64,000 nt of DNA, taken from the NCBI GenBank assembly GCA_964057225.1, contig OZ059895.1:4960001-5024000 (forward strand). The letters are read 5' to 3'. The notes under the pieces were generated by a model that did no database searches, had not been told where the DNA came from, and saw only the letters and a program-made list of their open reading frames with translations. Every line of letters starts with the position of its first letter. Within the stretch, counting starts at the first letter, position 1. The DNA is from Auanema rhodensis. Its lineage: Eukaryota; Animalia; Nematoda. The position numbers and the translations under genes were made by a program. Of the stretch, positions 15,046 through 43,184 are shown piece by piece.

Positions 15046-15478
15046 ACATACACTAATGCATCATTTTTCAAACGATCATAACTAATTTTTGTATTAAGCG
15101 TTTCTCAAAGAAGTATAGTGCATTCGATGCGGATTTTTAAGCTGCGTCGATCTGTGTTATCAGATGTGCGCTAGCTTGAAAATGCACCGAGATATCAACT
15201 GATATAAGTTCACACTTATATCCTCGATTTTCACCCTGAAGAATTAATTTTTTCGTCTTCACTGATGGCTTGACTGAGCTATCCACGTGGGTGGTGTATT
15301 TCTCATCCAGGCATGGTAGATGGGCGAATGGAGAATCGAGTATTGGGAGCTCAGATAAGATGTCGGCTCTTTCAGTGTGCGTCATGGAGCAACCGGAGGC
15401 AAGACGCTCGAAGTCGGCAAGTTCGGAACCGGAGAGGCGGACTACAGGCCTGGTTCTAGGTCCTTGAGATTCTGGTTT
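15046..15478. repeat. Composite insertion copy 5
   Basis: Same junctions; offset 2877 = 7x351+420. Confidence 0.95.
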
Positions 15479-16869: not shown

Positions 16870-17302
16870 ACATACACTAATGCATCATTTTTCAAACGAT
16901 CATAACTAATTTTTGTATTAAGCGTTTCTCAAAGAAGTATAGTGCATTCGATGCGGATTTTTAAGCTGCGTCGATCTGTGTTATCAGATGTGCGCTAGCT
17001 TGAAAATGCACCGAGATATCAACTGATATAAGTTCACACTTATATCCTCGATTTTCACCCTGAAGAATTAATTTTTTCGTCTTCACTGATGGCTTGACTG
17101 AGCTATCCACGTGGGTGGTGTATTTCTCATCCAGGCATGGTAGATGGGCGAATGGAGAATCGAGTATTGGGAGCTCAGATAAGATGTCGGCTCTTTCAGT
17201 GTGCGTCATGGAGCAACCGGAGGCAAGACGCTCGAAGTCGGCAAGTTCGGAACCGGAGAGGCGGACTACAGGCCTGGTTCTAGGTCCTTGAGATTCTGGT
17301 TT
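16870..17302. repeat. Composite insertion copy 6
   Basis: Same junctions; offset 1824 = 4x351+420. Confidence 0.95.
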
Positions 17303-19044
17303 CATCGAATGCACTATACTACATTGAGAAACGCTTAATACAAAAATTAGTTATGATCGTTTGAAAAATGATGCATTAGTGTATGTTGAGTTTCCATGTA
17401 CACTCAACATTGCTTCCAAAAACATTTTGACAAAAATTTTTTCGAAAAATTTCAAAATAATTTAGCAAAAAGTAGATGTTTTTAGATTCTTTTTTTCAAG
17501 GCAAAGACGATGGACAATGTTATTCAACGAAAAAATTAATTCTTCAGGGTGAAAATCGAGGATATAAGTGTGAACTTATATCAGTTGATATCTCGGTGCA
17601 TTTTCAAGCTAGCGCACATCTGATAACACAGATCGACGCAGCTTAAAAATCCGCATCGAATGCACTATACTTCTTTGAGAAACGCTTAATACAAAACTTA
17701 GTTATGATCGTTTGAAAAATGATGCATTAGTGTATGTTGAGTTTCCATGTACACTCAACATTGCTTCCAAAAACATTTTGACAAAAATTTTTTCGAAAAA
17801 TTTCAAAATAATTTAGCAAAAAGTAGATGTTTTTAGATTCTTTTTTTCAAGGCAAAGACGATGGACAATGTTATTCAACGAAAAAATTAATTCTTCAGGG
17901 TGAAAATCGAGGATATAAGTGTGAACTTATATCAGTTGATATCTCGGTGCATTTTCAAGCTAGCGCAAATCTGATAACACAGATCGACGCAGCTTAAAAA
18001 TCCGCATCGAATGCACTATACTTCATTGAGAAACGCTTAATACAAAAATTAGTTATGATCGTTTGAAAAATGATGCATTAGTGTATGTTGAGTTTCCATG
18101 TACACTCAACATTGCTTCCAAAAACATTTTGACAAAAATTTTTTCGAAACATTTCAAAATAATTTAGCAAAAAGTAGATGTTTTTAGATTCTTTTTTTCA
18201 AGGCAAAGACGATGGACAATGTTATTCAACGAAAAAATTAATTCTTCAGGGTGAAAATCGAGGATATAAGTGTGAACTTATATCAGTTGATATCTCGGTG
18301 CATTTTCAAGCTAGCGCACATCTGATAACACAGATCGACGCAGCTTAAAAATCCGCATCGAATGCACTATACTTCTTTGAGAAACGCTTAATACAAAACT
18401 TAGTTATGATCGTTTGAAAAATGATGCATTAGTGTATGTTGAGTTTCCATGTACACTCAACATTGCTTCCAAAAACATTTTGACAAAAATGTTTTCGAAA
18501 AATTTCAAAATAATTTAGCAAAAAGTAGATGTTTTTAGATTTTTTTTTTCAAGGCAAAGACGATGGACAATGTTATTCAACGAAAAAATTAATTCTTCAG
18601 GGTGAAAATCGAGGATATAAGTGTGAACTTATATCAGTTGATATCTCGGTGCATTTTCAAGCTTGCGCAAATCTGATAACACAGATCGACGCAGCTTAAA
18701 AATCCGCATCGAATGCACTATACTTCATTGAGAAACGCTTAATACAAAAATTAGTTATGATCGTTTGAAAAATGATGCATTAGTGTATGTTGAGTTTCCA
18801 TGTACACTCAACATTGCTTCCAAAAACATTTTGACAAAAATTTTTTCGAAAAATTTCAAGATAATTTAGCAAAAAGTAGATGTTTTTAGATTCTTTTTTT
18901 CAAGGCAAAGACGATGGACAATGTTATTCAACGAAAAAATTAATTCTTCAGGGTGAAAATCGAGGATATAAGTGTGAACTTATATCAGTTGATATCTCGG
19001 TGCATTTTCAAGCTTGCGCAAATCTGATAACACAGATCGACGCA

Positions 19045-19477
19045 ACATACACTAATGCATCATTTTTCAAACGATCATAACTAATTTTTGTATTAAGCGT
19101 TTCTCAAAGAAGTATAGTGCATTCGATGCGGATTTTTAAGCTGCGTCGATCTGTGTTATCAGATGTGCGCTAGCTTGAAAATGCACCGAGATATCAACTG
19201 ATATAAGTTCACACTTATATCCTCGATTTTCACCCTGAAGAATTAATTTTTTCGTCTTCACTGATGGCTTGACTGAGCTATCCACGTGGGTGGTGTATTT
19301 CTCATCCAGGCATGGTAGATGGGCGAATGGAGAATCGAGTATTGGGAGCTCAGATAAGATGTCGGCTCTTTCAGTGTGCGTCATGGAGCAACCGGAGGCA
19401 AGACGCTCGAAGTCGGCAAGTTCGGAACCGGAGAGGCGGACTACAGGCCTGATTCTAGGTCCTTGAGATTCTGGTTT
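19045..19477. repeat. Composite insertion copy 7 (one G>A change at ~19452)
   Basis: Offset 2175 = 5x351+420. GGCCTGATTC instead of GGCCTGGTTC, matching the T>I change in the ORF track. Confidence 0.95.
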
Positions 19478-22400
19478 CATCGAATGCACTATACTACATT
19501 GAGAAACGCTTAATACAAAAATTAGTTATGATCGTTTGAAAAATGATGCATTAGTGTATGTTGAGTTTCCATGTACACTCAACATTGCTTCCAAAAACAT
19601 TTTGACAAAAATTTTTTCGAAAAATTTCAAAATAATTTAGCAAAAAGTAGATGTTTTTAGATTCTTTTTTTCAAGGCAAAGACGATGGACAATGTTATTC
19701 AACGAAAAAATTAATTCTTCAGGGTGAAAATCGAGGATATAAGTGTGAACTTATATCAGTTGATATCTCGGTGCATTTTCAAGCTTGCGCAAATCTGATA
19801 ACACAGATCGACGCAGCTTAAAAATCCGCATCGAATGCACTATACTTCATTGAGAAACGCTTAATACAAAAATTAGTTATGATCGTTTGAAAAATGATGC
19901 ATTAGTGTATGTTGAGTTTCCATGTACACTCAACATTGCTTCCAAAAACATTTTGACAAAAATTTTTTCGAAACATTTCAAAATAATTTAGCAAAAAGTA
20001 GATGTTTTTAGATTCTTTTTTTCAAGGCAAAGACGATGGACAATGTTATTCAACGAAAAAATTAATTCTTCAGGGTGAAAATCGAGGATATAAGTGTGAA
20101 CTTATATCAGTTGATATCTCGGTGCATTTTCAAGCTAGCGCAAATCTGATAACACAGATCGACGCAGCTTAAAAATCCGCATCGAATGCACTATACTACA
20201 TTGAGAAACGCTTAATACAAAACTTATTTATGATCGTTTGAAAAATGATGCATTAGTGTATGTTGAGTTTCCATGTACACTCAACATTGCTTCCAAAAAC
20301 ATTTTGACAAAAATTTTTTCGAAAAATTTCAAAATAATTTAGCAAAAAGTAGATGTTTTTAGATTCTTTTTTTCAAGGCAAAGACGATGGACAATGTTAT
20401 TCAACGAAAAAATTAATTCTTCAGGGTGAAAATCGAGGATATAAGTGTGAACTTATATCAGTTGATATCTCGGTGCATTTTCAAGCTAGCGCACATCTGA
20501 TAACACAGATCGACGCAGCTTAAAAATCCGCATCGAATGCACTATACTTCATTGAGAAACGCTTAATACAAAAATTAGTTATGATCGTTTGAAAAATGAT
20601 GCATTAGTGTATGTTGAGTTTCCATGTACACTCAACATTGCTTCCAAAAACATTTTGACAAAAATTTTTTCGAAACATTTCAAAATAATTTAGCAAAAAG
20701 TAGATGTTTTTAGATTCTTTTTTTCAAGGCAAAGACGATGGACAATGTTATTCAACGAAAAAATTAATTCTTCAGGGTGAAAATCGAGGATATAAGTGTG
20801 AACTTATATCAGTTGATATCTCGGTGCATTTTCAAGCTAGCGCACATCTGATAACACAGATCGACGCAGCTTAAAAATCCGCATCGAATGCACTATACTA
20901 CATTGAGAAACGCTTAATACAAAACTTATTTATGATCGTTTGAAAAATGATGCATTAGTGTATGTTGAGTTTCCATGTACACTCAACATTGCTTCCAAAA
21001 ACATTTTGACAAAAATTTTTTCGAAACATTTCAAAATAATTTAGCAAAAAGTAGATGTTTTTAGATTCTTTTTTTCAAGGCAAAGACGATGGACAATGTT
21101 ATTCAACGAAAAAATTAATTCTTCAGGGTGAAAATCGAGGATATAAGTGTGAACTTATATCAGTTGATATCTCGGTGCATTTTCAAGCTAGCGCAAATCT
21201 GATAACACAGATCGACGCAGCTTAAAAATCCGCATCGAATGCACTATACTACATTGAAAAACGCTTAATACAAAAATTAGTTATGATCGTTTGAAAAATG
21301 ATGCATTAGTGTATGTTGAGTTTCCATGTACACTCAACATTGCTTCCAAAAACATTTTGACAAAAATTTTTTCGAAAAATTTCAAGATAATTTAGCAAAA
21401 AGTAGATGTTTTTAGATTCTTTTTTTCAAGGCAAAGACGATGGACAATGTTATTCAACGAAAAAATTAATTCTTCAGGGTGAAAATCGAGGATATAAGTG
21501 TGAACTTATATCAGTTGATATCTCGGTGCATTTTCAAGCTAGCGCAAATCTGATAACACAGATCGACGCAGCTTAAAAATCCGCATCGAATGCACTATAC
21601 TACATTGAGAAACGCTTAATACAAAACTTAGTTATGATCGTTTGAAAAATGATGCATTAGTGTATGTTGAGTTTCCATGTACACTCAACATTGCTTCCAA
21701 AAACATTTTGACAAAAATTTTTTCGAAAAATTTCAAAATAATTTAGCAAAAAGTAGATGTTTTTAGATTCTTTTTTTCAAGGCAAAGACGATGGACAATG
21801 TTATTCAACGAAAAAATTAATTCTTCAGGGTGAAAATCGAGGATATAAGTGTGAACTTATATCAGTTGATATCTCGGTGCATTTTCAAGCTAGCGCACAT
21901 CTGATAACACAGATCGACGCAGCTTAAAAATCCGCATCGAATGCACTATACTTCATTGAGAAACGCTTAATACAAAAATTAGTTATGATCGTTTGAAAAA
22001 TGATGCATTAGTGTATGTTGAGTTTCCATGTACACTCAACATTGCTTCCAAAAACATTTTGACAAAAATTTTTTCGAAACATTTCAAAATAATTTAGCAA
22101 AAAGTAGATGTTTTTAGATTCTTTTTTTCAAGGCAAAGACGATGGACAATGTTATTCAACGAAAAAATTAATTCTTCAGGGTGAAAATCGAGGATATAAG
22201 TGTGAACTTATATCAGTTGATATCTCGGTGCATTTTCAAGCTTGCGCAAATCTGATAACACAGATCGACGCAGCTTAAAAATCCGCATCGAATGCACTAT
22301 ACTTCTTTGAGAAACGCTTAATACAAAACTTAGTTATGATCGTTTGAAAAATGATGCATTAGTGTATGTTGAGTTTCCATGTACACTCAACATTGCTTCC

Positions 22401-25400
22401 AAAAACATTTTGACAAAAATTTTTTCGAAAAATTTCAAGATAGTTTAGCAAAAAGTAGATGTTTTTAGATTCTTTTTTTCAAGGCAAAGACGATGGACAA
22501 TGTTATTCAACGAAAAAATTAATTCTTCAGGGTGAAAATCGAGGATATAAGTGTGAACTTATATCAGTTGATATCTCGGTGCATTTTCAAGCTAGCGCAA
22601 ATCTGATAACACAGATCGACGCAGCTTAAAAATCCGCATCGAATGCACTATACTTCATTGAGAAACGCTTAATACAAAAATTAGTTATGATCGTTTGAAA
22701 AATGATGCATTAGTGTATGTTGAGTTTCCATGTACACTCAACATTGCTTCCAAAAACATTTTGACAAAAATTTTTTCGAAACATTTCAAAATAATTTAGC
22801 AAAAAGTAGATGTTTTTAGATTCTTTTTTTCAAGGCAAAGACGATGGACAATGTTATTCAACGAAAAAATTAATTCTTCAGGGTGAAAATCGAGGATATA
22901 AGTGTGAACTTATATCAGTTGATATCTCGGTGCATTTTCAAGCTTGCGCAAATCTGATAACACAGATCGACGCAGCTTAAAAATCCGCATCGAATGCACT
23001 ATACTTCATTGAGAAACGCTTAATACAAAAATTAGTTATGATCGTTTGAAAAATGATGCATTAGTGTATGTTGAGTTTCCATGTACACTCAACATTGCTT
23101 CCAAAAACATTTTGACAAAAATTTTTTCGAAACATTTCAAAATAATTTAGCAAAAAGTAGATGTTTTTAGATTCTTTTTTTCAAGGCAAAGACGATGGAC
23201 AATGTTATTCAACGAAAAAATTAATTCTTCAGGGTGAAAATCGAGGATATAAGTGTGAACTTATATCAGTTGATATCTCGGTGCATTTTCAAGCTTGCGC
23301 AAATCTGATAACACAGATCGACGCAGCTTAAAAATCCGCATCGAATGCACTATACTTCATTGAGAAACGCTTAATACAAAAATTAGTTATGATCGTTTGA
23401 AAAATGATGCATTAGTGTATGTTGAGTTTCCATGTACACTCAACATTGCTTCCAAAAACATTTTGACAAAAATTTTTTCGAAACATTTCAAAATAATTTA
23501 GCAAAAAGTAGATGTTTTTAGATTCTTTTTTTCAAGGCAAAGACGATGGACAATGTTATTCAACGAAAAAATTAATTCTTCAGGGTGAAAATCGAGGATA
23601 TAAGTGTGAACTTATATCAGTTGATATCTCGGTGCATTTTCAAGCTTGCGCAAATCTGATAACACAGATCGACGCAGCTTAAAAATCCGCATCGAATGCA
23701 CTATACTTCATTGAGAAACGCTTAATACAAAAATTAGTTATGATCGTTTGAAAAATGATGCATTAGTGTATGTTGAGTTTCCATGTACACTCAACATTGC
23801 TTCCAAAAACATTTTGACAAAAATTTTTTCGAAACATTTCAAAATAATTTAGCAAAAAGTAGATGTTTTTAGATTCTTTTTTTCAAGGCAAAGACGATGG
23901 ACAATGTTATTCAACGAAAAAATTAATTCTTCAGGGTGAAAATCGAGGATATAAGTGTGAACTTATATCAGTTGATATCTCGGTGCATTTTCAAGCTTGC
24001 GCAAATCTGATAACACAGATCGACGCAGCTTAAAAATCCGCATCGAATGCACTATACTTCATTGAGAAACGCTTAATACAAAAATTAGTTATGATCGTTT
24101 GAAAAATGATGCATTAGTGTATGTTGAGTTTCCATGTACACTCAACATTGCTTCCAAAAACATTTTGACAAAAATTTTTTCGAAACATTTCAAAATAATT
24201 TAGCAAAAAGTAGATGTTTTTAGATTCTTTTTTTCAAGGCAAAGACGATGGACAATGTTATTCAACGAAAAAATTAATTCTTCAGGGTGAAAATCGAGGA
24301 TATAAGTGTGAACTTATATCAGTTGATATCTCGGTGCATTTTCAAGCTTGCGCAAATCTGATAACACAGATCGACGCAGCTTAAAAATCCGCATCGAATG
24401 CACTATACTTCATTGAGAAACGCTTAATACAAAAATTAGTTATGATCGTTTGAAAAATGATGCATTAGTGTATGTTGAGTTTCCATGTACACTCAACATT
24501 GCTTCCAAAAACATTTTGACAAAAATTTTTTCGAAACATTTCAAAATAATTTAGCAAAAAGTAGATGTTTTTAGATTCTTTTTTTCAAGGCAAAGACGAT
24601 GGACAATGTTATTCAACGAAAAAATTAATTCTTCAGGGTGAAAATCGAGGATATAAGTGTGAACTTATATCAGTTGATATCTCGGTGCATTTTCAAGCTT
24701 GCGCAAATCTGATAACACAGATCGACGCAGCTTAAAAATCCGCATCGAATGCACTATACTTCTTTGAGAAACGCTTGATACAAAACTTAGTTATGATCGT
24801 TTGAAAAATGATGCATTAGTGTATGTTGAGTTTCCATGTACACTCAACATTGCTTCCAAAAACATTTTGACAAAAACTTTTTCGAAACATTTCAAAATAA
24901 TTTAGCAAAAAGTAGATGTTTTTAGATTCTTTTTTTCAAGGCAAAGACGATGGACAATGTTATTCAACGAAAAAATTAATTCTTCAGGGTGAAAATCGAG
25001 GATATAAGTGTGAACTTATATCAGTTGATATCTCGGTGCATTTTCAAGCTAGCGCAAATCTGATAACACAGATCGACGCAGCTTAAAAATCCGCATCGAA
25101 TGCACTATACTTCATTGAGAAACGCTTAATACAAAAATTAGTTATGATCGTTTGAAAAATGATGCATTAGTGTATGTTGAGTTTCCATGTACACTCAATA
25201 TTGCTTCCAAAAACATTTTGACAAAAATTTTTTCGAAACATTTCAAAATAATTTAGCAAAAAGTAGATGTTTTTAGATTCTTTTTTTCAAGGCAAAGACG
25301 ATGGACAATGTTATTCAACGAAAAAATTAATTCTTCAGGGTGAAAATCGAGGATATAAGTGTGAACTTATATCAGTTGATATCTCGGTGCATTTTCAAGC

Positions 25401-28400
25401 TTGCGCAAATCTGATAACACAGATCGACGCAGCTTAAAAATCCGCATCGAATGCACTATACTTCATTGAGAAACGCTTAATACAAAAATTAGTTATGATC
25501 GTTTGAAAAATGATGCATTAGTGTATGTTGAGTTTCCATGTACACTCAACATTGCTTCCAAAAACATTTTGACAAAAATTTTTTCGAAACATTTCAAAAT
25601 AATTTAGCAAAAAGTAGATGTTTTTAGATTCTTTTTTTCAAGGCAAAGACGATGGACAATGTTATTCAACGAAAAAATTAATTCTTCAGGGTGAAAATCG
25701 AAGATATAAGTGTGAACTTATATCAGTTGATATCTCGGTGCATTTTCAAGCTTGCGCAAATCTGATAACACAGATCGACGCAGCTTAAAAATCCGCATCG
25801 AATGCACTATACTTCATTGAGAAACGCTTAATACAAAAATTAGTTATGATCGTTTGAAAAATGATGCATTAGTGTATGTTGAGTTTCCATGTACACTCAA
25901 CATTGCTTCCAAAAACATTTTGACAAAAATTTTTTCGAAACATTTCAAAATAATTTAGCAAAAAGTAGATGTTTTTAGATTCTTTTTTTCAAGGCAAAGA
26001 CGATGGACAATGTTATTCAACGAAAAAATTAATTCTTCAGGGTGAAAATCGAGGATATAAGTGTGAACTTATATCAGTTGATATCTCGGTGCATTTTCAA
26101 GCTAGCGCAAATCTGATAACACAGATCGACGCAGCTTAAAAATCCGCATCGAATGCACTATACTTCATTGAGAAACGCTTAATACAAAAATTAGTTATGA
26201 TCGTTTGAAAAATGATGCATTAGTGTATGTTGAGTTTCCATGTACACTCAACATTGCTTCCAAAAACATTTTGACAAAAATTTTTTCGAAACATTTCAAA
26301 ATAATTTAGCAAAAAGTAGATGTTTTTAGATTCTTTTTTTCAAGGCAAAGACGATGGACAATGTTATTCAACGAAAAAATTAATTCTTCAGGGTGAAAAT
26401 CGAAGATATAAGTGTGAACTTATATCAGTTGATATCTCGGTGCATTTTCAAGCTTGCGCAAATCTGATAACACAGATCGACGCAGCTTAAAAATCCGCAT
26501 CGAATGCACTATACTTCATTGAGAAACGCTTAATACAAAAATTAGTTATGATCGTTTGAAAAATGATGCATTAGTGTATGTTGAGTTTCCATGTACACTC
26601 AACATTGCTTCCAAAAACATTTTGACAAAAATTTTTTCGAAACATTTCAAAATAATTTAGCAAAAAGTAGATGTTTTTAGATTCTTTTTTTCAAGGCAAA
26701 GACGATGGACAATGTTATTCAACGAAAAAATTAATTCTTCAGGGTGAAAATCGAGGATATAAGTGTGAACTTATATCAGTTGATATCTCGGTGCATTTTC
26801 AAGCTAGCGCAAATCTGATAACACAGATCGACGCAGCTTAAAAATCCGCATCGAATGCACTATACTTCATTGAGAAACGCTTAATACAAAAATTAGTTAT
26901 GATCGTTTGAAAAATGATGCATTAGTGTATGTTGAGTTTCCATGTACACTCAACATTGCTTCCAAAAACATTTTGACAAAAATTTTTTCGAAACATTTCA
27001 AAATAATTTAGCAAAAAGTAGATGTTTTTAGATTCTTTTTTTCAAGGCAAAGACGATGGACAATGTTATTCAACGAAAAAATTAATTCTTCAGGGTGAAA
27101 ATCGAAGATATAAGTGTGAACTTATATCAGTTGATATCTCGGTGCATTTTCAAGCTTGCGCAAATCTGATAACACAGATCGACGCAGCTTAAAAATCCGC
27201 ATCGAATGCACTATACTTCATTGAGAAACGCTTAATACAAAAATTAGTTATGATCGTTTGAAAAATGATGCATTAGTGTATGTTGAGTTTCCATGTACAC
27301 TCAACATTGCTTCCAAAAACATTTTGACAAAAATTTTTTCGAAACATTTCAAAATAATTTAGCAAAAAGTAGATGTTTTTAGATTCTTTTTTTCAAGGCA
27401 AAGACGATGGACAATGTTATTCAACGAAAAAATTAATTCTTCAGGGTGAAAATCGAGGATATAAGTGTGAACTTATATCAGTTGATATCTCGGTGCATTT
27501 TCAAGCTTGCGCAAATCTGATAACACAGATCGACGCAGCTTAAAAATCCGCATCGAATGCACTATACTACATTGAGAAACGCTTAATACAAAAATTAGTT
27601 ATGATCGTTTGAAAAATGATGCATTAGTGTATGTTGAGTTTCCATGTACACTCAACATTGCTTCCAAAAACATTTTGACAAAAATTTTTTCGAAAAATTT
27701 CAAAATAATTTAGCAAAAAGTAGATGTTTTTAGATTCCTTTTTTTAAGGCAAAGATGATGGACAATGTTATTCAACAAAAAAATTAATTCTTCAGGGTGA
27801 AAATCGAGGATATAAGTGTGAACTTATATCAGTAGATATCTCGGTGCATTTTTAAGCCAGCGCAAATCTGATAACACAGATCGACGCAGCTTAAAAATCC
27901 GCATCGAATGCACTATACTACATTGAGAAACGCTTAATACAAAAATTAGTTATGATCGTTTGAAAAATGATGCATTAGTGTATGTTGAGTTTCCATGTAC
28001 ACTCAACATTGCTTCCAAAAACATTTTGACAAAAATTTTTTCGAAAAATTTCAAAATAATTTAGCAAAAAGTAGATGTTTTTAGATTCTTTTTTTTAAGG
28101 CAAAAATGATGGACAATGTTATAAAACGAAAAAATTAATTCTTCAGGGTGAAAATCGAGGATATAAGTGTGAACTTATATCAGTTGATATCTCGGTGCAT
28201 TTTTAAGCCAGCGCAAATCTGATAACACAGATCGACGCAGCTTAAAAATCCGCATCGAATGCACTATACTACATTGAAAAACGCTTGATACAATAATTAG
28301 TTATGATCGTTTGAAAAATAATGCATTAGTGTATGTTGAGTTTCCATGTACACTCAACATTGCTTCCAAAAACATTTTGACAAAAATTTTTTCGAAAAAT

Positions 28401-31400
28401 TTCAAGATAATTTAGCAAAAAGTAGATGTTTTTAGATTCTTTTTTTCAAGGCAAAGACGATGGACAATGTTATTCAACGAAAAAATTAATTCTTCAGGGT
28501 GAAAATCGAGGATATAAGTGTGAACTTATATCAGTTGATATCTCGGTGCATTTTCAAGCTAGCGCAAATCTGATAACACAGATCGACGCAGCTTAAAAAT
28601 CCGCATCGAATGCACTATACTACATTGAGAAACGCTTAATACAAAACTTAGTTATGATCGTTTGAAAAATGATGCATTAGTGTATGTTGAGTTTCCATGT
28701 ACACTCAACATTGCTTCCAAAAACATTTTGACAAAAATTTTTTCGAAAAATTTCAAAATAATTTCACATTTTTAGATTTCTTTTTTTAAGGCGAAGACGA
28801 TGGACAATGTTATTTAACGAAAAAATTAATTCTTCAGGGTGAAAATCGAGGATATAAGTGTGAACTTATATCAGTTGATATCTCGGTGCATTTTCAAGCT
28901 TGCGCAAATCTGATAACACAGATCGACGCAGCTTAAAAATCCGCATCGAATGCACTATACTTCTTTGAGAAACGCTTAATACAAAAATTAGTTATGATCG
29001 TTTGAAAAATGATGCATTAGTGTATGTTGAGTTTCCATGTACACTCAACATTGCTTCCAAAAACATTTTGACAAAAATTTTTTCGAAAAATTTCAAAATA
29101 ATTTAGCAAAAAGTAGATGTTTTTAGATTCTTTTTTTCAAGGCAAAGACGATGGACAATGTTATTCAACGAAAAAATTAATTCTTCAGGGTGAAAATCGA
29201 GGATATAAGTGTGAACTTATATCAGTTGATATCTCGGTGCATTTTCAAGCTAGCGCAAATCTGATAACACAGATCGACGCAGCTTAAAAATCCGCATCGA
29301 ATGCACTATACTTCATTGAGAAACGCTTAATACAAAAATTAGTTATGATCGTTTGAAAAATGATGCATTAGTGTATGTTGAGTTTCCATGTACACTCAAC
29401 ATTGCTTCCAAAAACATTTTGACAAAAATTTTTTCGAAAAATTTCAAAATAATTTAGCAAAAAGTAGATGTTTTTAGATTCTTTTTTTCAAGGCAAAGAC
29501 GATGGACAATGTTATTCAACGAAAAAATTAATTCTTCAGGGTGAAAATCGAGGATATAAGTGTGAACTTATATCAGTTGATATCTCGGTGCATTTTCAAG
29601 CTTGCGCAAATCTGATAACACAGATCGACGCAGCTTAAAAATCCGCATCGAATGCACTATACTTCATTGAGAAACGCTTAATACAAAAATTAGTTATGAT
29701 CGTTTGAAAAATGATGCATTAGTGTATGTTGAGTTTCCATGTACACTCAACATTGCTTCCAAAAACATTTTGACAAAAATTTTTTCGAAAAATTTCAAAA
29801 TAATTTAGCAAAAAGTAGATGTTTTTAGATTCTTTTTTTCAAGGCAAAGACGATGGACAATGTTATTCAACGAAAAAATTAATTCTTCAGGGTGAAAATC
29901 GAGGATATAAGTGTGAACTTATATCAGTTGATATCTCGGTGCATTTTCAAGCTAGCGCAAATCTGATAACACAGATCGACGCAGCTTAAAAATCCGGATC
30001 GAATGCACTATACTTCTTTGAGAAACGCTTAATACAAAAATTAGTTATGATCGTTTGAAAAATGATGCATTAGTGTATGTTGAGTTTCCATGTACACTCA
30101 ACATTGCTTCCAAAAACATTTTGACAAAAATTTTTTCGAAAAATTTCAAAATAATTTAGCAAAAAGTAGATGTTTTTAGATTCCTTTTTTTAAGGCAAAG
30201 ATGATGGACAATGTTATTCAACAAAAAAATTAATTCTTCAGGGTGAAAATCGAGGATATAAGTGTGAACTTATATCAGTAGATATCTCGGTGCATTTTTA
30301 AGCCAGCGCAAATCTGATAACACAGATCGACGCAGCTTAAAAATCCGCATCGAATGCACTATACTACATTGAGAAACGCTTAATACAAAAATTAGTTATG
30401 ATCGTTTGAAAAATGATGCATTAGTGTATGTTGAGTTTCCATGTACACTCAACATTGCTTCCAAAAACATTTTGACAAAAATTTTTTCGAAAAATTTCAA
30501 GATAATTTAGCAAAAAGTAGATGTTTTTAGATTCTTTTTTTCAAGGCAAAGACGATGGACAATGTTATAAAACGAAAAAATTAATTCTTCAGGGTGAAAA
30601 TCGAGGATATAAGTGTGAACTTATATCAGTTGATATCTCGGTGCATTTTTAAGCCAGCGCAAATCTGATAACACAGATCGACGCAGCTTAAAAATCCGCA
30701 TCGAATGCACTATACTACATTGAAAAACGCTTGATACAATAATTAGTTATGATCGTTTGAAAAATAATGCATTAGTGTATGTTGAGTTTCCATGTACACT
30801 CAACATTGCTTCCAAAAACATTTTGACAAAAATTTTTTCGAAAAATTTCAAGATAATTTAGCAAAAAGTAGATGTTTTTAGATTCTTTTTTTCAAGGCAA
30901 AGACGATGGACAATGTTATTCAACGAAAAAATTAATTCTTCAGGGTGAAAATCGAGGATATAAGTGTGAACTTATATCAGTTGATATCTCGGTGCATTTT
31001 CAAGCTTGCGCAAATCTGATAACACAGATCGACGCAGCTTAAAAATCCGCATCGAATGCACTATACTTCTTTGAGAAACGCTTAATACAAAACTTAGTTA
31101 TGATCGTTTGAAAAATGATGCATTAGTGTATGTTGAGTTTCCATGTACACTCAACATTGCTTCCAAAAACATTTTGACAAAAATTTTTTCGAAAAATTTC
31201 AAAATAATTTCACATTTTTAGATTTCTTTTTTTGAGGCGAAGACGATGGACAATGTTATTTAACGAAAAAATTAATTCTTCAGGGTGAAAATCGAGGATA
31301 TAAGTGTGAACTTATATCAGTTGATATCTCGGTGCATTTTCAAGCTTGCGCAAATCTGATAACACAGATCGACGCAGCTTAAAAATCCGCATCGAATGCA

Positions 31401-32429
31401 CTATACTTCTTTGAGAAACGCTTAATACAAAACTTAGTTATGATCGTTTGAAAAATGATGCATTAGTGTATGTTGAGTTTCCATGTACACTCAACATTGC
31501 TTCCAAAAACATTTTGACAAAAATTTTTTCGAAAAATTTCAAGATAATTTAGCAAAAAGTAGATGTTTTTAGATTCTTTTTTTCAAGGCAAAGACGATGG
31601 ACAATGTTATTCAACGAAAAAATTAATTCTTCAGGGTGAAAATCGAGGATATAAGTGTGAACTTATATCAGTTGATATCTCGGTGCATTTTCAAGCTAGC
31701 GCAAATCTGATAACACAGATCGACGCAGCTTAAAAATCCGCATCGAATGCACTATACTTCATTGAGAAACGCTTAATACAAAAATTAGTTATGATCGTTT
31801 GAAAAATGATGCATTAGTGTATGTTGAGTTTCCATGTACACTCAACATTGCTTCCAAAAACATTTTGACAAAAATTTTTTCGAAAAATTTCAAAATAATT
31901 TAGCAAAAAGTAGATGTTTTTAGATTCATTTTTTTAAGGCAAAGACGATGGACAATGTTATTCAACGAAAAAATTAATTCTTCAGGGTGAAAATCGAGGA
32001 TATAAGTGTGAACTTATATCAGTTGATATCTCGGTGCATTTTCAAGCTTGCGCAAATCTGATAACACAGATCGACGCAGCTTAAAAATCCGCATCGAATG
32101 CACTATACTTCATTGAGAAACGCTTAATACAAAAATTAGTTATGATCGTTTGAAAAATGATGCATTAGTGTATGTTGAGTTTCCATGTACACTCAACATT
32201 GCTTCCAAAAACATTTTGACAAAAATTTTTTCGAAAAATTTCAAGATAATTTAGCAAAAAGTAGATGTTTTTAGATTCTTTTTTTCAAGGCAAAGACGAT
32301 GGACAATGTTATTCAACGAAAAAATTAATTCTTCAGGGTGAAAATCGAGGATATAAGTGTGAACTTATATCAGTTGATATCTCGGTGCATTTTCAAGCTT
32401 GCGCAAATCTGATAACACAGATCGACGCA

Positions 32430-32862
32430 ACATACACTAATGCATCATTTTTCAAACGATCATAACTAATTTTTGTATTAAGCGTTTCTCAAAGAAGTAT
32501 AGTGCATTCGATGCGGATTTTTAAGCTGCGTCGATCTGTGTTATCAGATGTGCGCTAGCTTGAAAATGCACCGAGATATCAACTGATATAAGTTCACACT
32601 TATATCCTCGATTTTCACCCTGAAGAATTAATTTTTTCGTCTTCACTGATGGCTTGACTGAGCTATCCACGTGGGTGGTGTATTTCTCATCCAGGCATGG
32701 TAGATGGGCGAATGGAGAATCGAGTATTGGGAGCTCAGATAAGATGTCGGCTCTTTCAGTGTGCGTCATGGAGCAACCGGAGGCAAGACGCTCGAAGTCG
32801 GCAAGTTCGGAACCGGAGAGGCGGACTACAGGCCTGGTTCTAGGTCCTTGAGATTCTGGTTT
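32430..32862. repeat. Composite insertion copy 8
   Basis: Same junctions and sequence as copy 1. Confidence 0.95.
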
Positions 32863-34253
32863 CATCGAATGCACTATACTACATTGAGAAACGCTTAATA
32901 CAAAAATTAGTTATGATCGTTTGAAAAATGATGCATTAGTGTATGTTGAGTTTCCATGTACACTCAACATTGCTTCCAAAAACATTTTGACAAAAATTTT
33001 TTCGAAAAATTTCAAAATAATTTAGCAAAAAGTAGATGTTTTTAGATTCCTTTTTTTAAGGCAAAGATGATGGACAATGTTATTCAACAAAAAAATTAAT
33101 TCTTCAGGGTGAAAATCGAGGATATAAGTGTGAACTTATATCAGTAGATATCTCGGTGCATTTTTAAGCCAGCGCAAATCTGATAACACAGATCGACGCA
33201 GCTTAAAAATCCGCATCGAATGCACTATACTACATTGAGAAACGCTTAATACAAAAATTAGTTATGATCGTTTGAAAAATGATGCATTAGTGTATGTTGA
33301 GTTTCCATGTACACTCAACATTGCTTCCAAAAACATTTTGACAAAAATTTTTTCGAAAAATTTCAAAATAATTTAGCAAAAAGTAGATGTTTTTAGATTC
33401 TTTTTTTTAAGGCAAAAATGATGGACAATGTTATAAAACGAAAAAATTAATTCTTCAGGGTGAAAATCGAGGATATAAGTGTGAACTTATATCAGTTGAT
33501 ATCTCGGTGCATTTTTAAGCCAGCGCAAATCTGATAACACAGATCGACGCAGCTTAAAAATCCGCATCGAATGCACTATACTACATTGAAAAACGCTTGA
33601 TACAATAATTAGTTATGATCGTTTGAAAAATAATGCATTAGTGTATGTTGAGTTTCCATGTACACTCAACATTGCTTCCAAAAACATTTTGACAAAAATT
33701 TTTTCGAAAAATTTCAAGATAATTTAGCAAAAAGTAGATGTTTTTAGATTCTTTTTTTCAAGGCAAAGACGATGGACAATGTTATTCAACGAAAAAATTA
33801 ATTCTTCAGGGTGAAAATCGAGGATATAAGTGTGAACTTATATCAGTTGATATCTCGGTGCATTTTCAAGCTTGCGCAAATCTGATAACACAGATCGACG
33901 CAGCTTAAAAATCCGCATCGAATGCACTATACTTCATTGAGAAACGCTTAATACAAAAATTAGTTATGATCGTTTGAAAAATGATGCATTAGTGTATGTT
34001 GAGTTTCCATGTACACTCAACATTGCTTCCAAAAACATTTTGACAAAAATTTTTTCGAAAAATTTCAAGATAATTTAGCAAAAAGTAGATGTTTTTAGAT
34101 TCTTTTTTTCAAGGCAAAGACGATGGACAATGTTATTCAACGAAAAAATTAATTCTTCAGGGTGAAAATCGAGGATATAAGTGTGAACTTATATCAGTTG
34201 ATATCTCGGTGCATTTTCAAGCTTGCGCAAATCTGATAACACAGATCGACGCA

Positions 34254-34686
34254 ACATACACTAATGCATCATTTTTCAAACGATCATAACTAATTTTTGT
34301 ATTAAGCGTTTCTCAAAGAAGTATAGTGCATTCGATGCGGATTTTTAAGCTGCGTCGATCTGTGTTATCAGATGTGCGCTAGCTTGAAAATGCACCGAGA
34401 TATCAACTGATATAAGTTCACACTTATATCCTCGATTTTCACCCTGAAGAATTAATTTTTTCGTCTTCACTGATGGCTTGACTGAGCTATCCACGTGGGT
34501 GGTGTATTTCTCATCCAGGCATGGTAGATGGGCGAATGGAGAATCGAGTATTGGGAGCTCAGATAAGATGTCGGCTCTTTCAGTGTGCGTCATGGAGCAA
34601 CCGGAGGCAAGACGCTCGAAGTCGGCAAGTTCGGAACCGGAGAGGCGGACTACAGGCCTGGTTCTAGGTCCTTGAGATTCTGGTTT
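34254..34686. repeat. Composite insertion copy 9
   Basis: Offset 1824. Confidence 0.95.
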
Positions 34687-36077
34687 CATCGAATGCACTA
34701 TACTACATTGAGAAACGCTTAATACAAAAATTAGTTATGATCGTTTGAAAAATGATGCATTAGTGTATGTTGAGTTTCCATGTACACTCAACATTGCTTC
34801 CAAAAACATTTTGACAAAAATTTTTTCGAAAAATTTCAAAATAATTTAGCAAAAAGTAGATGTTTTTAGATTCCTTTTTTTAAGGCAAAGATGATGGACA
34901 ATGTTATTCAACAAAAAAATTAATTCTTCAGGGTGAAAATCGAGGATATAAGTGTGAACTTATATCAGTAGATATCTCGGTGCATTTTTAAGCCAGCGCA
35001 AATCTGATAACACAGATCGACGCAGCTTAAAAATCCGCATCGAATGCACTATACTACATTGAGAAACGCTTAATACAAAAATTAGTTATGATCGTTTGAA
35101 AAATGATGCATTAGTGTATGTTGAGTTTCCATGTACACTCAACATTGCTTCCAAAAACATTTTGACAAAAATTTTTTCGAAAAATTTCAAAATAATTTAG
35201 CAAAAAGTAGATGTTTTTAGATTCTTTTTTTTAAGGCAAAAATGATGGACAATGTTATAAAACGAAAAAATTAATTCTTCAGGGTGAAAATCGAGGATAT
35301 AAGTGTGAACTTATATCAGTTGATATCTCGGTGCATTTTTAAGCCAGCGCAAATCTGATAACACAGATCGACGCAGCTTAAAAATCCGCATCGAATGCAC
35401 TATACTACATTGAAAAACGCTTGATACAATAATTAGTTATGATCGTTTGAAAAATAATGCATTAGTGTATGTTGAGTTTCCATGTACACTCAACATTGCT
35501 TCCAAAAACATTTTGACAAAAATTTTTTCGAAAAATTTCAAGATAATTTAGCAAAAAGTAGATGTTTTTAGATTCTTTTTTTCAAGGCAAAGACGATGGA
35601 CAATGTTATTCAACGAAAAAATTAATTCTTCAGGGTGAAAATCGAGGATATAAGTGTGAACTTATATCAGTTGATATCTCGGTGCATTTTCAAGCTTGCG
35701 CAAATCTGATAACACAGATCGACGCAGCTTAAAAATCCGCATCGAATGCACTATACTTCATTGAGAAACGCTTAATACAAAAATTAGTTATGATCGTTTG
35801 AAAAATGATGCATTAGTGTATGTTGAGTTTCCATGTACACTCAACATTGCTTCCAAAAACATTTTGACAAAAATTTTTTCGAAAAATTTCAAGATAATTT
35901 AGCAAAAAGTAGATGTTTTTAGATTCTTTTTTTCAAGGCAAAGACGATGGACAATGTTATTCAACGAAAAAATTAATTCTTCAGGGTGAAAATCGAGGAT
36001 ATAAGTGTGAACTTATATCAGTTGATATCTCGGTGCATTTTCAAGCTTGCGCAAATCTGATAACACAGATCGACGCA

Positions 36078-36510
36078 ACATACACTAATGCATCATTTTT
36101 CAAACGATCATAACTAATTTTTGTATTAAGCGTTTCTCAAAGAAGTATAGTGCATTCGATGCGGATTTTTAAGCTGCGTCGATCTGTGTTATCAGATGTG
36201 CGCTAGCTTGAAAATGCACCGAGATATCAACTGATATAAGTTCACACTTATATCCTCGATTTTCACCCTGAAGAATTAATTTTTTCGTCTTCACTGATGG
36301 CTTGACTGAGCTATCCACGTGGGTGGTGTATTTCTCATCCAGGCATGGTAGATGGGCGAATGGAGAATCGAGTATTGGGAGCTCAGATAAGATGTCGGCT
36401 CTTTCAGTGTGCGTCATGGAGCAACCGGAGGCAAGACGCTCGAAGTCGGCAAGTTCGGAACCGGAGAGGCGGACTACAGGCCTGGTTCTAGGTCCTTGAG
36501 ATTCTGGTTT
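36078..36510. repeat. Composite insertion copy 10
   Basis: Offset 1824. Confidence 0.95.
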
Positions 36511-38672
36511 CATCGAATGCACTATACTACATTGAGAAACGCTTAATACAAAAATTAGTTATGATCGTTTGAAAAATGATGCATTAGTGTATGTTGAGTT
36601 TCCATGTACACTCAACATTGCTTCCAAAAACATTTTGACAAAAATTTTTTCGAAAAATTTCAAAATAATTTAGCAAAAAGTAGATGTTTTTAGATTCCTT
36701 TTTTTAAGGCAAAGATGATGGACAATGTTATTCAACAAAAAAATTAATTCTTCAGGGTGAAAATCGAGGATATAAGTGTGAACTTATATCAGTAGATATC
36801 TCGGTGCATTTTTAAGCCAGCGCAAATCTGATAACACAGATCGACGCAGCTTAAAAATCCGCATCGAATGCACTATACTACATTGAGAAACGCTTGATAC
36901 AATAATTAGTTATGATCGTTTGAAAAATGATGCATTAGTGTATGTTGAGTTTCCATGTACACTCAACATTGCTTCCAAAAACATTTTGACAAAAATTTTT
37001 TCGAAAAATTTCAAAATAATTTAGCAAAAAGTAGATGTTTTTAGATTCTTTTTTTTAAGGCAAAAATGATGGACAATGTTATAAAACGAAAAAATTAATT
37101 CTTCAGGGTGAAAATCGAGGATATAAGTGTGAACTTATATCAGTTGATATCTCGGTGCATTTTTAAGCCAGCGCAAATCTGATAACACAGATCGACGCAG
37201 CTTAAAAATCCGCATCGAATGCACTATACTACATTGAGAAACGCTTGATACAATAATTAGTTATGATCGTTTGAAAAATAATGCATTAGTGTATGTTGAG
37301 TTTCCATGTACACTCAACATTGCTTCCAAAAACATTTTGACAAAAATTTTTTCGGAAAATTTCAAGATAATTTAGCAAAAAGTAGATGTTTTTAGATTCC
37401 TTTTTTCAAGGCAAAGATGATGGACAATGTTATTCAACGAAAAAATTAATTCTTCAGGGTGAAAATCGAGGATATAAGTGTGAACTTATATCAGTTGATA
37501 TCTCGGTGCATTTTCAAGCTTGCGCAAATCTGATAACACAGATCGACGCAGCTTAAAAATCCGCATCGAATGCACTATACTTCTTTAAGAAACGCTTAAT
37601 ACAAAACTTAGTTATGATCGTTTGAAAAATGATGCATTAGTGTATGTTGAGTTTCCATGTACACTCAACATTGCTTCCAAAAACATTTTGACAAAAATTT
37701 TTTCGAAAAATTTCAAGATAATTTAGCAAAAAGTAGATGTTTTTAGATTCTTTTTTTCAAGGCAAAGACGATGGACAATGTTATTCAACGAAAAAATTAA
37801 TTCTTCAGGGTGAAAATCGAGGATATAAGTGTGAACTTATATCAGTTGATATCTCGGTGCATTTTCAAGCTAGCGCAAATCTGATAACACAGATCGACGC
37901 AGCTTAAAAATCCGCATCGAATGCACTATACTTCTTTGAGAAACGCTTAATACAAAAATTAGTTATGATCGTTTGAAAAATGATGCATTAGTGTATGTTG
38001 AGTTTCCATGTACACTCAACATTGCTTCCAAAAACATTTTGACAAAAATTTTTTCGAAAAATTTCAAAATAATTTAGCAAAAAGTAGATGTTTTTAGATT
38101 CCTTTTTTTAAGACAAAGACGATGGACAATGTTATTCAACGAAAAAATTAATTCTTCAGGGTGAAAATCGAGGATATAAGTGTGAACTTATATCAGTTGA
38201 TATCTCGGTGCATTTTCAAGCTAGCGCAAATCTGATAACACAGATCGACGCAGCTTAAAAATCCGCATCGAATGCACTATACTTCTTTGAGAAACGCTTA
38301 ATACAAAAATTAGTTATGATCGTTTGAAAAATGATGCATTAGTGTATGTTGAGTTTCCATGTACACTCAACATTGCTTCCAAAAACATTTTGACAAAAAT
38401 TTTTTCGAAAAATTTCAAAATAATTTCACATTTTTAGATTTCTTTTTTTAAGGCGAAGACGATGGACAATGTTATTTAACGAAAAAATTAATTCTTCAGG
38501 GTGAAAATCGAGGATATAAGTGTGAACTTATATCAGTTGATATCTCGGTGCATTTTCAAGCTAGCGCAAATCTGATAACACAGATCGACGCAGCTTAAAA
38601 ATCGGCATCGAATGCACTATACTACATTGAGAAACGCTTAATACAAAAATTAGTTATGATCGTTTGAAAAAT

Positions 38673-38837
38673 ACTGATATATGTTCACACTTATATCCTC
38701 GATTTTCACCCTGAAGAATTAATTTTTTCGTTGAATAACATTGTCCATCGTATTCGCCTTGAAAAAAGGAATTTAAAAACATCTACTTTTTGTGAAATTG
38801 TTTTGAAATTTTTCGGGAAAATTTTTGTCAAAATGTT
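38673..38837 (-). repeat. Inverted, more diverged partial satellite monomer terminating the array
   Basis: ACTGATATATGTTCACAC...TTTTTGTCAAAATGTT is the reverse complement of the monomer segment AACATTTTGACAAA...GTGTGAAC(A)TATATCAGT, with extra substitutions. Confidence 0.92.
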
Positions 38838-38847
38838 CGCTACAATT

Positions 38848-38876
38848 TTTTTGCTTAGGCTCAGCCTATGCAAAAA
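38848..38876. other. 29-bp palindrome containing the telomere repeat; candidate DNA-elimination (SFE-like) motif, copy 1
   Basis: TTTTTGCTTAGGC-TCA-GCCTATGCAAAAA. The palindrome is seen directly; the function is inferred. Confidence 0.6.
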
Positions 38877-39343
38877 CGAAAACACTGTAAGTAATGAACT
38901 CATCAAATAATATTACAAATTTTTAAAATATGTAACTCTCTACATATACTCTTATAAAGAGAGATGAACAACTAACTATTTCAAACAGGACTATATATAG
39001 AGAGATGAACAACTTTTTTGATACTATATAACTATTTGCTCAAATTCGGAAAGCTCGATCTCAGTCGGAAACAAGGCCTGTAAGAAATTGGAGAATATGA
39101 AGAATGAAGAAGAATTTTTAACTTAGATCTACATTGCGTTGTTATTAATCTTAAGAAAATCGAAGAATCGAACATTGCATAAATCCCTTGTTTTTGACTG
39201 AGATCGAGCTTTCCGAATTTGAGCAAATAGTTATATAGTATCAAAAAATTGCTCATCTATCTTTATAAGAGTATATGTAGAGAGTTACATATTTTAAAAA
39301 TTTGTAATATTATTTGATGAGTTCATTACTTACAGTGTTTTCG

Positions 39344-39372
39344 TTTTTGCATAGGCTGAGCCTAAGCAAAAA
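39344..39372. other. 29-bp palindrome, candidate SFE-like motif, copy 2 (inverted)
   Basis: TTTTTGCATAGGC-TGA-GCCTAAGCAAAAA, with a perfect GCCTAA on the gene-rich side. Confidence 0.62.
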
Positions 39373-39506
39373 AATTGTAGCGAAGACTGAATTTAAATAT
39401 TTATGAACTTTGCACATATTTACAATACGTTAAATCTTCATTGTTTCATTGAATAGATCTTCATAACATACGACATCAAGAAGTTTTCCATTTCAGTTTT
39501 ATAAAA

Positions 39507-39794
39507 TCAATGTTTTGTGTTATTGAGGGTAATTTTCTCACTTTGGTAAGAAATAGTTCCAAATGTTGTGAGTGTTGATACGATTAACACAATAAATAGT
39601 AAAATTATAATGATACTGTAGACTAATTTACAAGAAAATTGTGATCGAATTGGTTCCGTAGGTGGAACACTGCCGATAGTTAATACTTCTAAATTTACTG
39701 AAGTACTTTCGGGTTGCGTTAAATTTGATACAGCCTTGTGATTATTACAGTTCGAGTCAGCTGTCTTCGAAGTGCTTAAAGTATTAACAATCAT
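39507..39794 (-). CDS. Hypothetical 95-aa protein with one C-terminal transmembrane segment
   Basis: S/T/N-rich N-terminus followed by LVYSIIIILLFIVLIVSTL. A TTTTCAG acceptor lies ~57 nt upstream of the ATG (~39852-39858). No recognised family. Confidence 0.4.
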   Translation of the reverse strand: MIVNTLSTSKTADSNCNNHKAVSNLTQPESTSVNLEVLTIGSVPPTEPIRSQFSCKLVYSIIIILLFIVLIVSTLTTFGTISYQSEKITLNNTKH

Positions 39795-41342
39795 ATTTGA
39801 ACAGCTCAGTATTCATACAGTTACAGATTTAAAGATTTGATTGAATACAACCTGAAAATATTAGTTTGTGTAATGTTCTAACAAATACTCTTATGAATTT
39901 TGAACATTATATTACTTGCCTTAAATAGCGTTCGAAATGTAAAACGTATGTTCAAGCAGGATGAACGTGAAATATCTAAACAATTATGTTTTCAGTGTTG
40001 TATAATCGATTGTTCGTCACCTACTTTCCATGTCGTGCGTTTCATAACCTGATCTCAGCACATAGCCAACTTTTCTAAAGTGCTATAATTTTAAGAAACT
40101 GATGTTATATATAAAAGAAGTATTGAAATATCAAATTATATGTAAGATCACAATTTGAAGCAGTTTACTGATTGGAAGTGTTTGTTAAAGAATTTAAAGA
40201 AAACCATATACTCGTTTTTGCTTTTTGTTTCCGAATAATGCTTTATTGATTTAACCAACTTCCTCGGCATAATATAATCTTTTAGTAAATTTTCGTCGCT
40301 CATGTAGGCTTACAAACACTTACAATAAATCTGGTATGTAATCTAGCAAACATTTAAATAGTCTGTTTTCGGGTGAAAGTTCAAATCTTCAAAACAGTTA
40401 TACTAGAATGAATATAAACTTTGGACTGACTGCTCGGATCTAGTATTACATTATATAGTATTCCTTATTATAACAAACTGTAGAGAGTATATGAAGTCAT
40501 CATATTTATCTAAATTCCATAATAAATTCAATAAGATTATACCGAGTAAACGAACGTATCAGAATTTATATTTAGCCTACATTTCATCTTATTCTCATGT
40601 AAAAAACCATCGAAGTGAAAGTTCGCTATGATAAGAAACATAAGATTAAGACTATACATATTTAAGAATTATTATTTATTATTATCATGTAAATCATGTA
40701 AAATTTTATGTTACGAAATTATAAACTACTAAAAGTAGTCTTTGGGCATCTTTTCAAATATCCATAAAAGCTTAATAATTTAATTAAAGTATACTTATTT
40801 AAGAGTAAATTTAAAACCAAATTAAGATTGAGGTAGAAGTACCTATCACTTTATTAATGTTAGGCTAAAATTCTAAATACGTTTGCAAGCGTAGACAGGA
40901 ATTTGACTAGCATTAAGCTCATTTAAGAAAAGTAATACTATTTCAAATTAATTCTGAGCAACCAATACGACTCCAAAATGGAAACAATTTTATTTATAAC
41001 AACACATTTTCATTGAAACGGTGATACGTAAATAGGGTGAAGTATTTAGATAAATGCTGTTTTATTTGCTTGGTTTAATCATGAAAAGTATTCTAAGTAT
41101 TTTCTTCAGCTGATAAAACCAATAATTCCTGGTTTTATCAAATTCAATGAACGAGATGTTTTCGAATTGTGATTGTGCAAAATTAAAAATTTTCGAGCCT
41201 ATTGTCTTATATACATATAAAAAAGTATACACATATATCTATATATATATATTAGACTCAATACATTTTTTGTCCGTCACGAAGTAATTAGTATTTACCA
41301 GAACTTTGTGTAACTGGGCAACTTTGTGGAAACACAGATGTG

Positions 41343-43184
41343 ATGCAGATTGCTAGATCTTCTCTTTATATATCTAGAGGAGCCAGAAATTCTCGCTGGA
41401 ATGCAGATGCGCATTTAAGGTAATATTAGTTTTGTTGAAGTAAACTCGTTTTTTAAGGGCTCATGAACGATCAGTTGCCATTGAAGAAGATGCCATATTA
41501 CGCATTGATACATGCCAATTAGCCGCGAACAGTCCTATAGAAGATTTTTACTCAGCTGCTAAATGTAGGCTTAGATCTTTAATTTATCTAAATCTATCTC
41601 ATTTATCTAAATAATTTTTGAAATGAAGGTCTCTCATCTCGTGCTTTACTTGTGGGTGTTTTTGATGGTCACGGAGGACCACAATGTAGCCGTTATATCT
41701 CCACTAATTTATATCCTTATCTGTGTGCTTCGGTTCTCAAAAAGCATGAGGTATCAAGTGTGTTTATTTCATCATTTCTATATTTGGTATAGATTGAAGA
41801 AATTGAATTGGAGAAACGACTAGAATGGATATTTAGCAGTGCCGATGTGCATCCTAATCAATTTTTGTAGCGTTTCTCATGTGTGAAGGATTTTTTATTT
41901 TTTTCAGCAAAAGCAAAGGAGGTGGCGTATCGAAGTATCATAATAAATTTTTGAGAAGCAATGATTTTTACTTGGGAACCGTAAGGGAAGCATTGAAGGT
42001 TCTCTCTTCAGACCGTGTAATGTTTTCAAATTTTTAATTTTTTTTAGTCTGCATTCGAAGCGTGCGATGAGGATTTATCAAATGCAGCTCTACCTGATGC
42101 CAAAGGAATAGTAGATAGGTGTGATAGGATTATATGTATATATTTTTAGTAAAAGCATTCTAGGCTTTCTGTTCGAATTGCAGCTTCTGGCTCATGTTCA
42201 ACACTAGCCCATATTCGATCCAATCATCTTCATGTCGCAAATTCCGGGGATGGTGCAGCTGTATTAGGTTGGTACATTCTTCTATTCAATTAGTTTGCTC
42301 TTCAGGAATTACGGGACCCAACGGCGGTGTTACTGCACGACAGCTTTCTCGTGCTCATTGTATCGATAATCCTGATGAAGTTCGCTATATGTTCTATGCT
42401 AATGTTAATTCATATTGTTAGGCTCAAAGAATACGAAATAGCCATCCGAGATCTGAAACCAATATTCTGCGTGGTGGACGTCTCTTGGGTGAATTATTCC
42501 CTCTTCGTGCTTTTGGTGATGTCAGATATAAATGGCCATTAGAGTTACAAAAGGTATAAATTTCAAATGAGCTAATACCTAAGAGTTCTGTGTTAGGTTG
42601 TCTTGGAACCACTAGGAAATCCTCCACCTCCCAATCTACTAACTCCTCCTTATCTAACGGCCTCTCCTGAAGTTTTCTATCACAAACTAACTCAGAATGA
42701 TAAATTTCTTGTGTTAGCCACAGACGGATTATGGGAATGGTTGGATCCAGATACTGTTGTTCGACTGGTGCATGATCATACACTAGGTACTCAAACTTTG
42801 CAACCCTTTCAACCAAAACCTGCTTCAACTTTATTTGAGGTATATACTTTGGTTTCTTTCGAAGTTTAAATTTGTGCTATAGGTATATAAAGAACTTAGA
42901 GACAGAAAAAAAGGGGAACAAAAACAGAAAAAACCTATTGATGATAATTGTGCTACTCACATTATCCGTCATGCCCTCGGAGGTATAACTGGCGGTGCTA
43001 GTAGACAATATGAACGACTTATAGACATTCTACAGGCATGTCTAAATAAAAGAGTTATTTAATAATTATTTATAATTTTAAGATTCCTCCTGGACGAGCA
43101 CGTAATTATCGCGATGACATTTCGGTTATAGTAGTTCATTTCAACGAGAAATACTTGTCACAATTGCCTGATGATGTAGAGTAA
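41343..43184 (+). CDS. pdp-1: Pyruvate dehydrogenase phosphatase (PP2C/PPM family), multi-exon
   Basis: Spliced translation gives MQIARSS..., QLAANSPIEDF, GVFDGHGG, LHVANSGD, GRLLGELFPLRAFGD, TPPYLTASPEV, FLVLATDGLWE and ARNYRDDISVIVVHF...VE*, all PP2C/PDP motifs. Confidence 0.95.

Follow-up and report, generated by a model that had tools for sequence, protein, structure and literature searches.

A mirrored pair of SFE-like palindromes at a satellite/gene boundary of Auanema rhodense: a candidate site of programmed DNA elimination

Sequence-defined DNA elimination is among the few cases in animals in which a short motif directs both chromosome breakage and the formation of a new telomere. The stretch of A. 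rhodense DNA analyzed here (the window, 64,000 nucleotides in length) passes from a satellite block into a block of genes, and two 29-nt palindromes lie at the border in inverted orientation. This raises the question of whether the border is a site at which the chromosome is cut and healed, and how the putative signal came to be present twice. The preferred reading, to which a probability of about 0.8 is assigned, is that the gene-proximal palindrome (39344-39372) is a break-site motif (Sequence For Elimination, SFE) of the type described in A. rhodense and Oscheius tipulae, which would be cut and telomere-healed with loss of the satellite side. The elimination system itself is already known from publications of 2022 and 2026 for O. 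tipulae (Dockendorff et al. 2022; bioRxiv 10.64898/2026.03.06.709695) and for A. rhodense in August 2026 (Gonzalez de la Rosa et al., bioRxiv 10.64898/2026.08.27.747507). The only novelty of the site, and a small one, is that its paired motifs belong to a fold-back. The coordinates of the features are collected in Table 1.

Table 1. Features at and around the satellite/gene boundary (positions are those of the window)
Feature	Position	Strand	Remarks
351-bp satellite tandem array, 108 copies, some 340-bp units	1..38672	+	TRF; presumed germline-restricted, eliminated side
Inverted satellite segment, 165 nt	38673..38837	-	94% identity to ~98 units, all minus; adjoins the fold-back
Fold-back (mirror-image duplication), 549 bp, one SFE-like palindrome per arm	38836..39384		Inverted-repeat and alignment analysis
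Distal SFE-like palindrome	38848..38876		Presumed eliminated side; likely back-up break site
Stretch present in the left arm only, 42 bp	38972..39013	+	From a 41-bp tandem duplication
Asymmetric central loop, 85 nt	39089..39173		Inverted-repeat and folding analysis
Gene-proximal SFE-like palindrome	39344..39372		Predicted functional break and telomere-addition site; innermost motif
9 nt fully in telomere register, AGCCTAAGC (opposite strand GCTTAGGCT)	39359..39367	-	3' end of the retained half-site
AT-rich unique spacer between break site and first recognizable gene	39385..41600		No repeats; short ORFs only; ~2.2 kb
PP2C-type phosphatase exons, first recognizable gene of the retained side	41652..42869	+	PF00481, E = 1e-11; 13 PP2C homologues

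Composition and rarity of the palindromes

Two 29-bp sequences in inverted relation had been singled out by the first-pass annotation, and on re-reading their letters, coordinates and orientation proved to be exact. The distal copy (38848-38876) reads TTTTTGCTTAGGCTCAGCCTATGCAAAAA and the gene-proximal copy (39344-39372) reads TTTTTGCATAGGCTGAGCCTAAGCAAAAA, each being the exact reverse complement of the other, and the spacing between the copies is 496 bp. Both are built of two 14-nt arms around a single base (14 + 1 + 14), with a GGCT-N-AGCC core, and 13 of the 14 pairs are complementary, the mismatched pair being that of positions 8 and 22. The distal copy splits as TTTTTGCTTAGGCT-C-AGCCTATGCAAAAA, with its central C at 38862, and the gene-proximal copy as TTTTTGCATAGGCT-G-AGCCTAAGCAAAAA, with its central G at 39358. 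Each palindrome thereby has a GGC-NNN-GCC center, in which GGC occupies positions 11-13 and GCC positions 17-19. The flanks are AT-rich, with values of 74-78% AT in all four of the adjoining 50-nt segments.

A scan of the 64 kb for 14 + 1 + 14 palindromes with at most two mismatched pairs returned these two sequences only; for palindromes with at most one mismatched pair, the mean expectation from shuffled sequence is 0.04. Occurrences of the degenerate SFE-like motif expected by chance in the window amount to 0.00, and the cores GGCTNAGCC and GGCNNNGCC are each confined to the two palindromes in a search of the window.

The two halves of each palindrome differ in the extent of their agreement with the telomere repeat. 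The outward half consists of TTTTT followed by 9 nt in telomere register, compared to 6 nt in the inward-facing half, where the register is limited by the mismatch at position 8. The perfect GCCTAA previously noted at 39360-39365 in the gene-proximal copy was confirmed, and position 15 of the motif is the first base to depart from a continued telomere repeat. The motif amounts to a pair of 9-nt telomere segments in head-to-head arrangement (GCTTAGGCT-N-AGCCTAAGC). This prompts the tentative and rather doubtful idea that it originated in a telomere-telomere junction and is recognized by a telomere-repeat-binding protein acting as a dimer.

Two adjacent fold-backs at the satellite border

The palindromes had been put forward as a pair of break-site motifs. 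Both are real, but they are not independent of each other, since they form part of the arms of a single 549-bp fold-back. This placement accounts for their exact reverse complementarity, and the mirror symmetry of the fold-back explains why the perfect half points outward in each copy. The outermost 125 bp of the arms mirror each other perfectly (38836-38960 versus 39260-39384), and the inner parts of the arms are ~93% identical. The 41-bp tandem duplication (38953-38973 / 38994-39014) is found in the left arm only, and the arms have therefore diverged after the mirror duplication took place. When folded as a single strand, the element yields -217.7 kcal/mol (z = -40.6).

Missed adapters in long-read data can yield palindromic artefacts, and a chimeric palindromic read of this kind might in principle have introduced a false fold-back into the assembly. 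Such an adapter artefact would be a perfect, loop-free palindrome, and for this reason it is disfavored here, where a 42-bp insertion and several substitutions distinguish the two arms, which enclose an asymmetric loop of 85 nt. On the basis of the differing arms and the asymmetric loop this explanation was rejected, and it is considered extremely unlikely.

The satellite block of more than 38 kb reported to the left of the site is likewise real, occupying positions 1-38672 with a period of 351. TRF gives 84% matches over the ~38.7-kb array, and the spacing of an anchor within the satellite is 351 in 67 of 86 intervals. Neither TTAGGC nor GCCTAA hexamers occur in the array. The published FISH probes AT-1, XR-1, XT-1 and XT-2 were all without a match in the window (0 of 4), their best ungapped matches being equal to those of shuffles; the satellite of the window therefore represents another family than those of the four probes. 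At its last unit the array turns back on itself rather than simply stopping, and the order at the border is S+ S- followed by U- U+ and then the genes (S denoting satellite and U the unique sequence of the fold-back). The border is thus composed of two adjacent fold-backs, one of satellite and one of the SFE-bearing element, which meet at 38836/38837. The distance from the motif to the end of the satellite is 164-700 bp, and that from the motif to the first gene is 2.3 kb.

Fold-back junctions which lack an SFE are present within the 351-bp satellite itself, and a variant unit of this kind, having been amplified, is present in ten copies. These are located at 7700-8250 and then at 9434, 10907, 12380, 15257, 17081, 19256, 32641, 34465 and 36289. 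Each variant unit comprises an internal fold-back, formed by a satellite copy in inverted orientation, and after it the same foreign insert of 235 bp, which is GC-rich (53%) and unmatched in the rest of the window. Among the ten copies, nine show 100% identity. The variant units with their 235-bp insert are the cause of the alternating blocks of GC content 0.31 and 0.34 along the array.

Another interpretation would regard the 549-bp element as a non-autonomous fold-back or MITE-type transposon, whose telomere-like palindrome arose by chance and which is either unrelated to elimination or serves as a vehicle for the spread of SFEs. The long, near-perfect inverted arms and the short loop would suit such an element, as would the position of the palindromes, which begin just 12 bp inward of its outer ends. 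A target-site duplication is lacking, however, in that no direct repeat of 2-10 bp was found at 38835/39385, and the 64-kb window contains no second copy of the element. The published number of strong motif matches is, moreover, ~47 genome-wide, and not in the hundreds (Gonzalez de la Rosa et al.), and the left end of the element adjoins the second, independent fold-back of the satellite, which is better explained by repair scars than by insertion. Given the absence of a target-site duplication and of other copies in the window, the transposon interpretation was rejected and is judged to be very unlikely.

For the origin of the pair we infer a fold-back (inverted) duplication, a type of rearrangement frequent in this satellite DNA, in which copying would have turned back along the same sequence from a broken end or through a template switch during replication. 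The presence of fold-backs without an SFE in the same satellite implies that the SFE-bearing fold-back is most simply another product of the same process. The border resembles other fold-back inverted duplications in its two adjacent mirror structures, in its short asymmetric loops and in the lack of a target-site duplication, yet it differs from them in that a whole break signal, presumably a functional one, is contained in the duplicated segment, which ends only 12 bp beyond it. A further proposal, tentative and rather doubtful, is that the mirrored pair is the heritable scar of a cut made by the elimination nuclease in the germ line and repaired by folding back. This would provide a route to the duplication of SFEs and the origin of back-up sites, and might also contribute to the many fold-backs in the germline-only satellites of this species.

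Predicted break, telomere healing and loss of the satellite side

The motif of A. rhodense is present at each of the 28 internal break sites (Gonzalez de la Rosa et al.). It is described as a 29-nt sequence with two 14-base arms, an unconserved central base, highly conserved residues beside the center and AT-rich flanks, and it is located at the transitions between tandem-repeat blocks and gene-rich DNA. On each of chromosomes 1, 2 and 3, there is a second strong motif at a distance of up to 1.1 kb, toward the eliminated side (Gonzalez de la Rosa et al.). The site in the window shares with this motif its 29-nt, 14 + 1 + 14 form and its AT-rich flanks, the comparison being made with the verbal description rather than with a weight matrix. 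It also shares the location exactly at a repeat/gene transition and the second motif on the presumed eliminated side, at a distance of 496 bp in this case, and there is no difference in the features tested. The length, the symmetry, the core, the flanks, the repeat/gene boundary and the nearby second motif thus support, as far as sequence can, the earlier suggestion of an SFE-type break site, and the site very probably belongs to the 28 already published.

Strong matches to the motif are distributed among break sites (28), eliminated DNA (15) and retained DNA (4), and the four high-scoring motifs in retained DNA show no telomere addition (Gonzalez de la Rosa et al.). In addition, some satellite blocks of the X chromosome (XR-1/2) persist in somatic cells (Gonzalez de la Rosa et al.). 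A satellite border which carries a motif is therefore not absolute proof of a break site. The palindromes of the window might by analogy be silent and uncut, with the fold-back a mere repair scar at the edge of a satellite that is kept in the soma, for example an X-retained one like XR-2, and the SFE-less fold-back junctions within the same satellite would be in keeping with this. Against such a view, strong matches are extremely rare genome-wide, whereas here two of them lie exactly at the transition from repeat to genes, and the satellite has no match to the XR-1 probe. A silent motif is consequently held to be unlikely.

From the anatomy of the sequence and its agreement with the published descriptions, we infer that the gene-proximal palindrome is cleaved and healed and that the satellite side is lost. 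In early somatic blastomeres, the elimination machinery would recognize the 29-nt palindrome and break both strands at its center, 39358. After resection, the 3' end on the gene side would read ...TTTTTGCTTAGGCT, with its last 9 nt in telomere register, and telomerase would then add TTAGGC repeats to this end, such that the somatic chromosome would begin at 39359. The interior of the fold-back and the 351-bp satellite, i.e., all DNA leftward of this base, would be lost. The first-pass annotation had placed the somatic start at ~39360, an estimate which is here refined on the basis of the telomere register, although it is still a prediction. In A. rhodense, telomeres are added at the junction of motif positions 14 and 15 (Gonzalez de la Rosa et al.), in agreement with the departure from the telomere repeat at position 15, and the first base to be retained is thus predicted to be 39359.

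The mirror copy at 38848-38876 would itself lie within eliminated DNA, where it is probably cut as well or may stand in as a back-up should the proximal copy fail. If both copies were cut, a fragment of 495 bp (38863-39357) would be freed and lost together with the satellite. Since the gene-proximal copy is the innermost, it is the cut at this copy that would set the somatic end.

The block of genes previously described to the right of the site is real, and includes PP2C, SSXT, NDUFS4 and homeodomain genes. For the PP2C exon, a protein-index search found relatives at 86% identity or less only. Rfam and tRNA scans of the window returned nothing. An ORF of 95 aa on the minus strand (39507-39794), located 135 bp from the putative break site, includes a hydrophobic stretch. 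A search of 5.8 billion proteins gave no relatives of this ORF and Pfam gave no match, and it is probably not a gene. A low-coverage metagenome contig (L002:1-4780, ENA ERZ22382522) exhibits the same PP2C-SSXT order as the window at 41.6-44.3 kb, and carries two further ORFs upstream of PP2C, where the window has the putative break site and the satellite. Both the SFE core and the telomere repeat are absent from this contig. It derives from a more distant and more GC-rich nematode, and therefore says little about the break site.

Significance and relation to known elimination systems

The site adds no new principle to what has been established for sequence-defined elimination. It does offer a clean example, at the level of single bases, of how a putative break signal and its fail-safe copy can arise in a single step through inverted duplication, and the half-site toward the retained DNA terminates in 9 nt that fit the telomere register perfectly. 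That paired motifs may be inverted or mirror copies of one another is not mentioned in the text of the A. rhodense preprint (Gonzalez de la Rosa et al.). If it is true that all three of the published paired sites are fold-backs, this would suggest a general origin for back-up SFEs.

The SFE of O. tipulae is a degenerate palindrome of 29 bp, in which GGC at positions 11-13 and GCC at positions 17-19 are separated by a 3-bp spacer; it is broken at its center, the GGC/GCC priming TTAGGC addition on both ends, and it is both necessary and sufficient for breakage (Dockendorff et al. 2022; bioRxiv 10.64898/2026.03.06.709695). Among its back-up sites, one is 473 bp away from a canonical site, and two SFEs at a spacing of 1 kb are both functional (Dockendorff et al. 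2022; bioRxiv 10.64898/2026.03.06.709695). The palindromes of the window share with this motif the identical positions of GGC and GCC, the 29-bp length and the T-rich outer positions. Beyond the core, there is little agreement with the O. tipulae consensus: TTTA (positions 1-4) and AGGT (positions 4-7) are replaced here by TTTT and TTGC, and only T1-3 and G6 are common to both. The SFEs of O. tipulae also contain 3-8 mismatched pairs, compared to one in the present case, and elimination in that species trims the chromosome ends only and removes little satellite DNA.

The SFEs of Caenorhabditis species (C. auriculariae and C. monodelphis, as well as C. parvicauda) are of another kind, being non-palindromic, bipartite or single 24-bp elements which sit upstream of the addition site without spanning it (PMC13370393). 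In Ascaris, unlike the site proposed here, the breaks are spread over chromosomal breakage regions of 3-6 kb with no sequence motif, yet the outcome is alike, in that satellite-rich DNA is lost from the soma and the breaks are healed by telomere addition.
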